From Oopsacas minuta (Eukaryota > Animalia > Porifera): a DNA stretch of 64,000 nt. Of the stretch, positions 391 to 2,139 are shown in pieces. Each line of letters opens with the position of its first letter. Within the stretch, counting starts at the first letter, position 1. A model generated the notes under the pieces. That model was not told the origin of the DNA and did not search any database. It saw only the letters and a list, made by a program, of their open reading frames with translations. Location of the stretch: positions 47,690 through 111,689 of the forward strand of contig JAKMXF010000354.1 of the NCBI GenBank assembly GCA_024704765.1. The letters are read 5' to 3'. The translations under genes and the position numbers were made by a program.

Positions 391-2139
391 ATGGCTGAAT
401 ATCTTCCATCTGGAAGTGACGAGGATGTATCAGCTACTGACTACCCGGACCCTCTAGCAGGGAATGATCTTGATGGAGATAATATTCAGACACATTATGT
501 CGTTACTAGCAAAGAGACAGAGACTAGTTACGATATGCCTGATAGCGAAACAGAGCTAACAGAAGATCTATCACTCTTACAGATATTCTTACCTAATTAT
601 TCTAAAAAGGATTTAATTGCTGATTCTTCTGCACACATAGAAGGTGAAAATAAAGGATTAGTTGATAAGAAAGTGAATGATGATTCGGTAAAGGAATCAT
701 TTCTAGAAGTTTTTTCTAAATATATTGAATCTTTGAACCTATTAGATCCTCTTTACCTAAAGATTTTACTTGAGATATTAAGCGGGGAATTGACTGAAGA
801 TCAGCTGTTTGTTAACCTTCCTCGATATTATCAATGTAAATCATCATTTATTAGTCCAACGTTTTCTTCAGACAATCATAATACTTCAGTTCATGAATAT
901 ATAAACTGGGTTTCCAAAAATAAGAAAGTTAAAGGAAATTGTAACGCAGTGCCATACGGGATTCTTCCTAAAGGCTTAGCTGCAGAGATTACAGATGTGA
1001 AAATCAATTGCTACAGATCCGACGACCAAATGTATCAATCCAACCAAGTGCTTAGAGAGAAAGTAGCTCGAGGGAATAGCTTTGTAACTTTCTACGGTAA
1101 AGGTGTCACGAATAGTGGTTGTGTAGTGCGAGGGTTAAAGAAGTTCAGTGGTGGGTATTGGGATGATGATGACATACAAAATACTGATCATAGTGGCTGG
1201 TCAAGGTACTTTATATCACCGCCTACTTCTGCCACCAGTGTTGTTGTGATGGAGAAAGTTAATGGAGAAGCTGCACATGTTAGTGTCCGTCTCTTGGGAA
1301 CTAAATTTCTTATTTTCTGTGGATCTAAGAATGTCCATCTCCTGGTTACACGCAGACAGCATCTGTTAAAGTACGAGGAACAGAGGTATAGTTATGCTTG
1401 TGTGGTTGGAGAAGCTTTCTTTGACTTGTTAGAGGGTATGAGTGAGTTTGAACGTGTGCGACTGCTCTTGTTTATGTCACACACAGGCTTCACAGCTGTT
1501 TGTGAATTATTACAGCCTAATAACCAACATATCGTTAACCTATCCTATCTCTCCGCCCCAGTAATAAAATTCATAACTTGGGTACCTTGTGATATCGGAG
1601 GAGTCAACACTATCTGTTCCCTGCCCCCTAATATTGCAATAGATTTGGCTACCTATCTGTCTCTTCCTGCAGCTAAATACTCTCTTATACAAATAGCTGA
1701 GTTACCTGCAGAGCTAGCATCTGTCAGAGCATACAAGCAGAGCGAGGGAGTAGTACTATACTTTACTAACAGCAAACAGGAAGTTATTGGTTTAATGAAG
1801 TTTAAATCTATTTGGTATATTCTCTTACGAGCAGTCAGAGAAATTATAAAATATCAAATGAATCAGATTTCCAAAGGTAAATTGAAGAGTCATCAAGCGA
1901 AGATTAATGGAACAGAATCAATTGAAAAGAGATTTAAGCGAATTAATAAGAGTTTGAATCTCAATAGAGGATCATACCTAGCCTGGCAAGATATTTGTAC
2001 GGATTTCTTAGAGTGGGTAATAGACCTCACAAAGTTTGGGAAATCTATTTCATTTTATTCCCAATTTCCTAATATGTGGGATAAATTCTTGAAAGAAAAG
2101 TCTCTTAAGGAGCCTCCAACCCTTCGCAAGTCAATCTAG
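391..2139 (+). CDS. Putative ATP-dependent RNA ligase (Trl1/T4 Rnl1-like nucleotidyltransferase), intronless, acidic N-terminal extension
   Basis: 582-aa ORF with ligase-type motifs in canonical order: I EKVNGE (K289, nt 1255), Ia GSKNVH, III CELLQPNNQHIV, IV EGVVLY, V MKFKSIWY. Confidence 0.7.
   Translation: MAEYLPSGSDEDVSATDYPDPLAGNDLDGDNIQTHYVVTSKETETSYDMPDSETELTEDLSLLQIFLPNYSKKDLIADSSAHIEGENKGLVDKKVNDDSVKESFLEVFSKYIESLNLLDPLYLKILLEILSGELTEDQLFVNLPRYYQCKSSFISPTFSSDNHNTSVHEYINWVSKNKKVKGNCNAVPYGILPKGLAAEITDVKINCYRSDDQMYQSNQVLREKVARGNSFVTFYGKGVTNSGCVVRGLKKFSGGYWDDDDIQNTDHSGWSRYFISPPTSATSVVVMEKVNGEAAHVSVRLLGTKFLIFCGSKNVHLLVTRRQHLLKYEEQRYSYACVVGEAFFDLLEGMSEFERVRLLLFMSHTGFTAVCELLQPNNQHIVNLSYLSAPVIKFITWVPCDIGGVNTICSLPPNIAIDLATYLSLPAAKYSLIQIAELPAELASVRAYKQSEGVVLYFTNSKQEVIGLMKFKSIWYILLRAVREIIKYQMNQISKGKLKSHQAKINGTESIEKRFKRINKSLNLNRGSYLAWQDICTDFLEWVIDLTKFGKSISFYSQFPNMWDKFLKEKSLKEPPTLRKSI

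Follow-up and report, generated by a model that had tools for sequence, protein, structure and literature searches.

A stretch of 64,000 nucleotides from the genome of the glass sponge Oopsacas minuta (contig JAKMXF010000354.1, positions 47,690 to 111,689; referred to below as the window) contains, close to its start, a gene for a predicted RNA ligase, which is the subject of this analysis. The gene is a single open reading frame (ORF) on the forward strand that runs from ATG to stop codon without introns and encodes a protein of 582 amino acids (Table 1). Its start methionine and first residues are common to the closest homologs in an alignment of 24 sequences. A search of the 61.5-Mb assembly (61,460,524 bases in 365 contigs) detected this gene as the only copy of the DUF7920 family in the sponge genome. 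The published O. minuta genome is described with 365 scaffolds, approximately 61 Mb, 36% GC and 1.59 introns per gene (PMC10280926). The GC content of the ligase gene (approximately 37%) equals that of the surrounding DNA. As the read depth was level across the gene and its neighbors, the ligase gene is not a contaminant, a reading that was ruled out by this depth together with the host context.

Pfam analysis identified DUF7920 (PF25536) as the only family in the 582 residues, with a match to residues 210 to 482 (34.5 bits, E value 1.5e-8, cut-off 27), and 94 of 95 aligned homologs match the same model. The T4-Rnl1/Trl1 ligase model PF09511 is matched by 24 of the 95 aligned family members; the sponge protein itself did not reach the threshold of this model in the Pfam scan. 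No match for the sponge protein was obtained in NCBIfam or in a PDB sequence search with the single sponge sequence. TPR matches of the 24-sequence profile against PDB sequences were rejected as spurious, as they were inflated by repeats and contained no significant stretch. A word-based homolog search returned at least 102 proteins, nearly all with PF25536. The closest among the matches listed are six proteins of 562 to 602 amino acids from ENA assemblies (56-70% identity), and the next is a 484-residue Branchiostoma protein (P0008; 38% identity, E value 2.5e-86). The other listed members stem from bivalves, hemichordates, a bryozoan, many crustaceans, springtails, rotifers, the choanoflagellate Salpingoeca and a crustacean majanivirus, and no bacterial family member is found among the 102 matches listed. 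Distant members carry Trl1 kinase and cyclic phosphodiesterase (CPD) domains, and a second search identified them as kinetoplastid-type Trl1 proteins (Bodo, Leptomonas). The Salpingoeca rosetta member (P0088) is publicly named 'ferredoxin' and looks misannotated. DUF7920 is mentioned in no paper of the literature searched, and Pfam calls the family a domain of unknown function, even though its Branchiostoma member is very probably the characterized ligase BfRNL.

The original prediction, made from the DNA letters, had described an animal gene for a stand-alone ligase of the Trl1/T4-Rnl1 type, had listed the ligase motifs I, Ia, III, IV and V in this order and had named K289 as the lysine to be checked for conservation. 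The protein does contain the five motifs in this order, and the numbering of K289 was correct. The residues K289, N291, G292, E293, S312, K313, E372, H380, E452, G453, K470 and K472 are invariant in both the 24-sequence alignment and the 95-sequence alignment, and the motif matches are therefore not due to chance. The motif III region reads VCELLQPNNQHIV (residues 370 to 382), in which E372 is followed by H380. In the N-subdomain, conservation reaches at least 90% at R227, K251 and F252 in the 24-sequence alignment, and an acidic insert separates the K251-F252 element from motif I. The stand-alone character was likewise confirmed, as no kinase or phosphodiesterase domain is present on the polypeptide, which stops directly after the C-terminal domain (C-domain). 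The N-terminal extension has no counterpart in the aligned amphioxus, mollusc, arthropod, rotifer and choanoflagellate proteins. Its ratio of nonsynonymous to synonymous substitution rates (dN/dS) of 0.15-0.24 indicates that the extension is coding and constrained.

The fold was predicted with AlphaFold for residues 160 to 582 on the basis of the 95-sequence alignment, which yielded a model with a mean predicted local distance difference test score (pLDDT) of 93.7 and a predicted template modeling score (pTM) of 0.92. The model adopts the nucleotidyltransferase fold expected of a ligase, and the Foldseek comparison placed fungal Trl1 ligase domains (9QW7, 6N67, 6N0T and 8RBJ; E values of approximately 1e-10) at the top, followed by T4 Rnl1 and archaeal Rnl3 enzymes. 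All top structural matches down to a Z score of 8.8 are RNA or DNA ligases; RLIG1 has no entry among the listed structural matches, and no search aimed at RLIG1 homologs was made. VIA re-alignment with the Trl1 ligase domains (Trl1-LIG) gave Z scores of 25.5-28.1 and root-mean-square deviations (rmsd) of 3.0-3.6 over 334-343 residues, with the C-domain covered. For 6N0T, model residues 1-419 correspond to chain residues 35-405 (334 aligned, rmsd 3.0, Z score 28.1). The match to T4 Rnl1 extends over approximately 250 residues (Z scores 19.5-19.8, with 252 residues at 19.8) and ends at model residue 362, which corresponds to chain residue 278 of approximately 375. The helices of the modeled C-domain span residues 474-494, 500-522, 526-547 and 559-569. 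The Rnl6 clade is defined by a distinctive C-domain (Banerjee et al., PMC6379707), and both parts of its hallmark, the Rnl1-like N-subdomain and the all-helical C-domain of Trl1-LIG, were matched in the whole model. Since the Trl1-specific C-domain is also matched, the modeled protein belongs with Trl1-LIG (Rnl6) and not with T4 Rnl1; the double designation that had been proposed is borne out at the level of the superfamily and can be narrowed to its Trl1 part. This structural result assigns DUF7920 to the Rnl6 ligase clade.

Table 1. Parts of the sponge ligase, their positions in the window and the proposed counterparts in Chaetomium Trl1 (CtTrl1)
Feature	Position	Strand	CtTrl1 counterpart	Remarks
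Complete intronless coding sequence, DUF7920/Trl1-LIG-type RNA ligase	391..2139	+		ORF list and PF25536 match; stop codon included
Acidic N-terminal extension, residues 1-115	391..735	+		23% Asp+Glu; six-member sponge-like clade only
Adenylyltransferase domain, residues ~200-473, Rnl1-like N-subdomain included	988..1809	+		DUF7920 match at residues 210-482; superposition on Trl1-LIG and T4 Rnl1
R227, K251-F252			R99, K120-F121	Probable counterparts by order and spacing
Motif I, EKVNGE, residues 288-293	1252..1269	+	TLKENG; K148 for K289	K289, predicted AMP-accepting lysine
Motif Ia, GSKNVH, residues 311-316	1321..1338	+	S168-K169-H-S; S168-K169 for S312-K313	G311, S312 and K313 invariant
Motif III, E372 then H380	1498..1536	+	E218 for E372; H227 for H380	H380 invariant
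Motif IV, EGVVLY, residues 452-457	1744..1761	+	E300-G for E452-G453	E452, G453, V455 and Y457 invariant
Motif V, KFKSIWY, residues 470-476	1798..1818	+	K323 and K325 in FFKYK for K470 and K472	
RxxRE (R480, R483, E484)	1828..1842	+	R334xxR337-E338	Start of C-domain helix; candidate 2'-phosphate pocket; each at least 90% conserved
All-helical C-terminal domain, Trl1-LIG type, residues 474-582	1810..2136	+		Model helices and structural alignment

The residues of the sponge protein were mapped onto fungal Trl1 by motif order and spacing in Chaetomium numbering (PMC6379707, PMC12440814) and not by residue-by-residue superposition. Functional roles are known for CtTrl1 K148, K169, E218, H227, E300, K323, K325, R334 and R337 (PMC6379707, PMC12440814). 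The S168-K169 motif contacts the ATP gamma-phosphate and the RNA 5'-phosphate, and H227, R334 and R337 hold a sulfate that is taken as a mimic of the RNA 2'-phosphate (PMC6379707). In the sponge protein the conserved histidine lies 8 residues beyond the motif III glutamate (9 in CtTrl1), and the two arginines lie 8 and 11 residues past motif V (9 and 12 in CtTrl1); in both proteins a glutamate follows the second arginine. As these putative counterparts of the 2'-phosphate pocket (H380 and R480xxR483-E484) are conserved, the enzyme most likely seals 3'-OH,2'-phosphate ends to 5'-phosphate ends with ATP, after separate healing of the ends. The use of ATP, the dependence on the 2'-phosphate and the substrates are predictions from homology.

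The nearest known system is BfRNL, reportedly described by Englert et al. in 2010 as the stand-alone sealing enzyme of Branchiostoma floridae. A relation to the amphioxus sealing enzyme had been part of the original prediction and is borne out by the Branchiostoma match, as the protein taken to be BfRNL (P0008) belongs to the same Pfam family and its identity with the sponge ligase extends over 73% of the latter. The two proteins carry identical residues in motifs I, Ia, III, IV and V and the same RxxRE, and both stand alone without kinase or CPD. BfRNL coexists with RtcB in amphioxus (PMC10680797), as does the ligase in the sponge genome, and, together with added healing domains, complements yeast trl1-delta (PMC10946426, PMC3400036). 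In contrast to BfRNL, the sponge protein is approximately 100 residues longer, with its acidic N-terminal extension, sits on a long branch and is encoded by an intronless gene. A further difference is that no counterpart of the amphioxus PNK/CPDase was recognized in the sponge by Pfam models, which found only a larger kinase-2H-HAD protein. The family is thus already known and characterized in amphioxus but little studied, and the earlier label 'uncharacterized' holds for the sponge protein and not for its family.

Fungal Trl1-LIG (Chaetomium 6N0T/6N67/8RBJ and Candida glabrata 9QW7) matches the sponge protein structurally over its whole length, including the Rnl6 C-domain, and has the same motif order and proposed residue counterparts from R99 to R334xxR337-E338. 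Nevertheless, the identity in the structural alignments is only 15-18%, sequence and profile searches of PDB sequences make no link, and the sponge protein differs by a tyrosine at the position of motif IV Arg305 and by its acidic insert before motif I. Most fungal ligases are fused to kinase and CPD domains, unlike the sponge protein; the Mucorales RNL is a stand-alone, sealing-only enzyme like the sponge ligase (PMC10946426). In kinetoplastid Trl1 (TbTrl1 and the Bodo and Leptomonas proteins), the ligase domain belongs to DUF7920 and forms the closest outgroup to the animal stand-alone ligases, and Banerjee et al. (PMC6379707) noted an RxxR beside motif V; the protein is, however, only 23-29% identical to the sponge ligase and carries fused kinase and CPD domains. 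RNA interference demonstrated that this enzyme is essential for the splicing of tRNA-Tyr (PMC4931112). T4 Rnl1 shares the adenylyltransferase domain with its N-subdomain, and it stands alone with a separate healing enzyme, as the sponge ligase does. However, its C-domain is unmatched, so the sponge protein lacks the tRNA-specificity domain of the Rnl1 type, and T4 Rnl1 joins 2'-OH,3'-OH ends without 2'-phosphate sealing (PMC12440814). With neither a kinase nor a 2H CPD on its polypeptide, the sponge protein is also not a trifunctional Trl1. It is a sealing-only Rnl6 ligase, nearest to BfRNL and farther from the Mucorales RNL and fungal Trl1-LIG.

The sponge genome was searched for further RNA-repair proteins. 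An intact RtcB gene is present (C166:313522-314835, forward strand; 521-residue open frame, E value 3.5e-155) and the sponge would therefore have both RNA-joining chemistries. An exon for Tpt1 was detected above cut-off, and CLP1, NOL9, PNKP and USB1 were found. Six-frame genome searches with PF05881 (CNPase) and with the kinetoplastid kinase-CPD segment gave no match, which is not proof of absence. The CPD model PF08302 matches one predicted protein just below its cut-off. This protein is encoded by a 779-codon ORF (C19:30737-33076, forward strand, equivalent to L019:1267-3603) and contains a P-loop kinase domain (AAA_33), two HxTx motifs (HITL and HVTI), the sub-threshold tRNA_lig_CPD match, a 'Swiss Army Knife RNA repair' domain (HAD_SAK_1) and a weak nucleotidyltransferase palm that resembles poly(A) polymerases. 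Its 2H assignment is based on the two HxTx motifs and the sub-threshold Pfam match. The AlphaFold prediction of this protein is confident for the kinase only (mean pLDDT 57), and a homolog search with the kinase-2H part as query returned mostly kinase-only matches and no amphioxus PNK/CPDase. Judged by its domains, the kinase-2H-HAD protein is a reasonable candidate for the end-healing partner of the ligase. The ORF downstream of its gene has an R3H domain. A second large ORF of 1413 codons (C221:633795-638036, reverse strand, equivalent to L020:795-5036) encodes an AAA_33 kinase near the N-terminus and a CUE domain near the C-terminus, and a 230-residue AAA_33 paralog lies just upstream of it.

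Taken together, these results make it quite probable that the gene product is an active stand-alone RNA ligase that depends on ATP, belongs to the Trl1-LIG (Rnl6) type, is the glass-sponge ortholog of BfRNL, was inherited vertically and works beside RtcB. In the proposed mechanism, K289 would attack ATP to form the ligase-AMP intermediate and the AMP would be handed to the 5'-phosphate of the RNA. The 3'-OH of the second end, gripped through its 2'-phosphate by H380, R480 and R483, would then attack the activated end. The product would be a 3'-5' junction that carries a 2'-phosphate, which Tpt1 would clear. Because neither a kinase nor a cyclic phosphodiesterase is part of the ligase, separate healing proteins would be needed, and ends left by the tRNA-splicing endonuclease, by Ire1-type or by other transesterifying nucleases would first be healed by such proteins; CLP1 and the kinase-2H-HAD multidomain protein are the candidates in the sponge genome. 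The ligase would act alongside RtcB and not replace it, and its gene would have lost its introns and gained the acidic N-terminal extension in the sponge lineage. Several observations weigh against this interpretation. The only public runs that carry the gene behave like DNA libraries, and the activity of the sponge members is predicted from homology. A long stem (1.31 changes per site) leads to the sponge clade, whose specificity may have drifted. The identification of P0008 as BfRNL is based on the sole Branchiostoma match among those listed and on the published description, and the mapping of the H380/R480/R483 pocket by order and spacing is one residue off. An invariant tyrosine of DUF7920, Tyr457, replaces Arg305 of CtTrl1, which is essential and contacts the adenine. 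Finally, the models for the Trl1-type kinase and CPD (PF08303 and PF08302) were unmatched above threshold in six-frame genome searches.

The strongest competing explanation concerns the ends that are joined. An active ligase of the same fold could join 2'-OH,3'-OH ends to 5'-phosphate ends like T4 Rnl1 and serve RNA repair together with a kinase-phosphatase partner. The HAD-type and PNKP-type phosphatase-kinase proteins in the genome would provide the required 2',3'-diol ends, and CtTrl1-LIG prefers the 2'-phosphate strongly but does not absolutely require it (PMC12440814). The long branch of the sponge clade and Tyr457 in motif IV (EGFVIR in CtTrl1, PMC6379707) would also be compatible with such a shift. 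Nevertheless, the C-domain is of the Trl1 and not of the Rnl1 type, and the histidine and the RxxRE that match the 2'-phosphate pocket of Trl1 are conserved in the sponge protein and throughout the family. Furthermore, the characterized amphioxus member requires the 2'-phosphate (PMC10946426), Tpt1 is kept in the genome, and the two HxTx motifs of the candidate healing protein are typical of 2H phosphodiesterases, which leave a 2'-phosphate. The joining of diol ends is thus considered unlikely.

The origin of the gene was analyzed with a maximum-likelihood tree of 48 proteins that was rooted with kinetoplastid-type ligase domains. The sponge ligase and six close relatives form a fully supported clade (100/100), whose sister group consists of Salpingoeca and another protist sequence (95/86); together they are in turn sister to a group of deuterostomes, molluscs and a bryozoan (97/97). 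Molluscs, hemichordates with amphioxus, springtails, barnacles and the malacostracans sampled were each recovered as clades, whereas neither the crustaceans overall nor the two rotifers were. The gene structure was compared in two bilaterians: the amphioxus gene (L021) spans 4.5 kb with approximately 8 introns and the oyster gene (Crassostrea, L022) 9.3 kb with approximately 10. About five intron positions coincide between the two, at the precision of tblastn, and correspond to residues ~168, ~224, ~275, 475 and 510 of the sponge protein. The gene tree is compatible with the species tree and the intron-bearing gene is ancient in other animals, as expected if the sponge gene is an ortholog of BfRNL. 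Because the gene tree is near the taxonomy, the bilaterian introns are shared, the dN/dS is only approximately 0.1 and the host has few introns, these data argue for vertical descent from a holozoan ancestor, after which the sponge lineage lost the introns and evolved faster.

The original prediction had instead considered a horizontal acquisition and offered the lack of introns as a possible sign of it. A transfer from a virus, protist or bacterium into the sponge lineage would fit with the intronless state of the gene in three genomes (the window and two relatives), the long stem branch and the lack of conserved flanking synteny, as nothing beyond the ligase gene itself is shared with the two related genomes. 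It would also fit with the repeats around the ligase gene and its downstream neighbor and with the presence of a family member in a large DNA virus of crustaceans. However, the nearest outgroups are choanoflagellates, followed by deuterostome and lophotrochozoan animals, in a tree that largely follows taxonomy, and bacterial members are absent among the matches listed. The viral copy (P0080, Trachysalambria curvirostris majanivirus) nests within the decapods beside Penaeus (86/93), which suggests the capture of a host gene by the virus. The intron positions shared by the bilaterian orthologs indicate an early presence of the gene in animals, its GC content and read depth equal those of the host surroundings, and an intronless gene is unremarkable in a genome with so few introns (PMC10280926). 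A transfer into the sponge lineage is accordingly regarded as highly improbable, and vertical descent is preferred.

Selection and polymorphism bear on the question of whether the gene is functional. Comparison with an ortholog of 66% identity gave a dN/dS of 0.10, and 0.076 in the catalytic part, at saturated dS, which demonstrates purifying selection. Five polymorphisms were found in the source sample, of which three are synonymous and the other two, P50S and E541K, lie outside the catalytic core. The reads came from four runs of one sample, and as they display flat depth through intergenic DNA with contig breaks at repeats only, these runs represent DNA; no RNA run was found among the public runs that hold the gene. 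A fifth run (X5), from another organism or population, contains the same gene at approximately 97% identity. On window positions 625-2258 this run has 44 differences and 2 gaps in 1636 bases, and its DNA neighboring the gene is more diverged and patchy. A silent relic, or a pseudo-enzyme that has lost catalysis and retains the fold for a different function, for instance RNA binding, would agree with the fact that transcript evidence was not obtained and with the hint of altered function given by the long branch and by the acidic extension confined to the clade, but is very hard to reconcile with a frame of 582 codons that is open in three genomes diverged to dS saturation, a dN/dS of approximately 0.1, the retention of all catalytic residues of motifs I, Ia, III, IV and V and the nature of the five polymorphisms. 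A pseudogene was ruled out by the open frame and the dN/dS.

The surroundings of the ligase gene were also inspected. The downstream neighbor (2603-3676, forward strand) is an intronless ORF of 357 residues that lies 460 bases beyond the ligase gene in the same orientation and encodes PHD-like zinc fingers (zf-HC5HC2H_2, E value 5e-13; the PHD match is weak). The pair formed by the ligase gene and this gene is bordered by repeats. Short dispersed repeats lie at window positions ~146-336, 3985-4381, 4400-4800 and 5600-5800, and their summed contig depth exceeds that of the intervening single-copy genes by a factor of 5-25. At 2527-2550 there is an (ATT)n microsatellite.

In the textbook view, animals use RtcB, which acts on 3'-phosphate ends, for the joining of tRNA and XBP1 halves, while fungi and plants use Trl1, which acts on 5'-phosphate ends and leaves a 2'-phosphate; amphioxus is treated as an oddity. 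The relatives in choanoflagellates and in at least seven animal phyla among the matches listed, together with the shared introns, identify the Trl1-type sealing enzyme as an old holozoan gene that has been kept in one of the earliest-branching animal groups. The known chemistry is unchanged by this finding, which extends a family and does not found one. Specific to the sponge clade are the constrained acidic extension of approximately 115 residues, the intron loss and the long branch. A wider picture is put forward here tentatively, as one that may or may not hold: a split heal-and-seal pathway of the yeast type, composed of the Rnl6 ligase, the kinase-2H-HAD protein and Tpt1, might operate beside RtcB in the glass sponge, in many invertebrate phyla and in choanoflagellates. 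In that case both chemistries would have been present in the earliest animals, and the 5'-phosphate route would have been lost repeatedly, for example in vertebrates, and not gained in amphioxus. The acidic extension might link the ligase with a partner or compartment particular to the lineage. With RtcB, an Rnl6 ligase, Tpt1 and large healing proteins that lack a ligase, the compact sponge genome provides a tractable setting in which to find out what purpose a second RNA-joining pathway serves.

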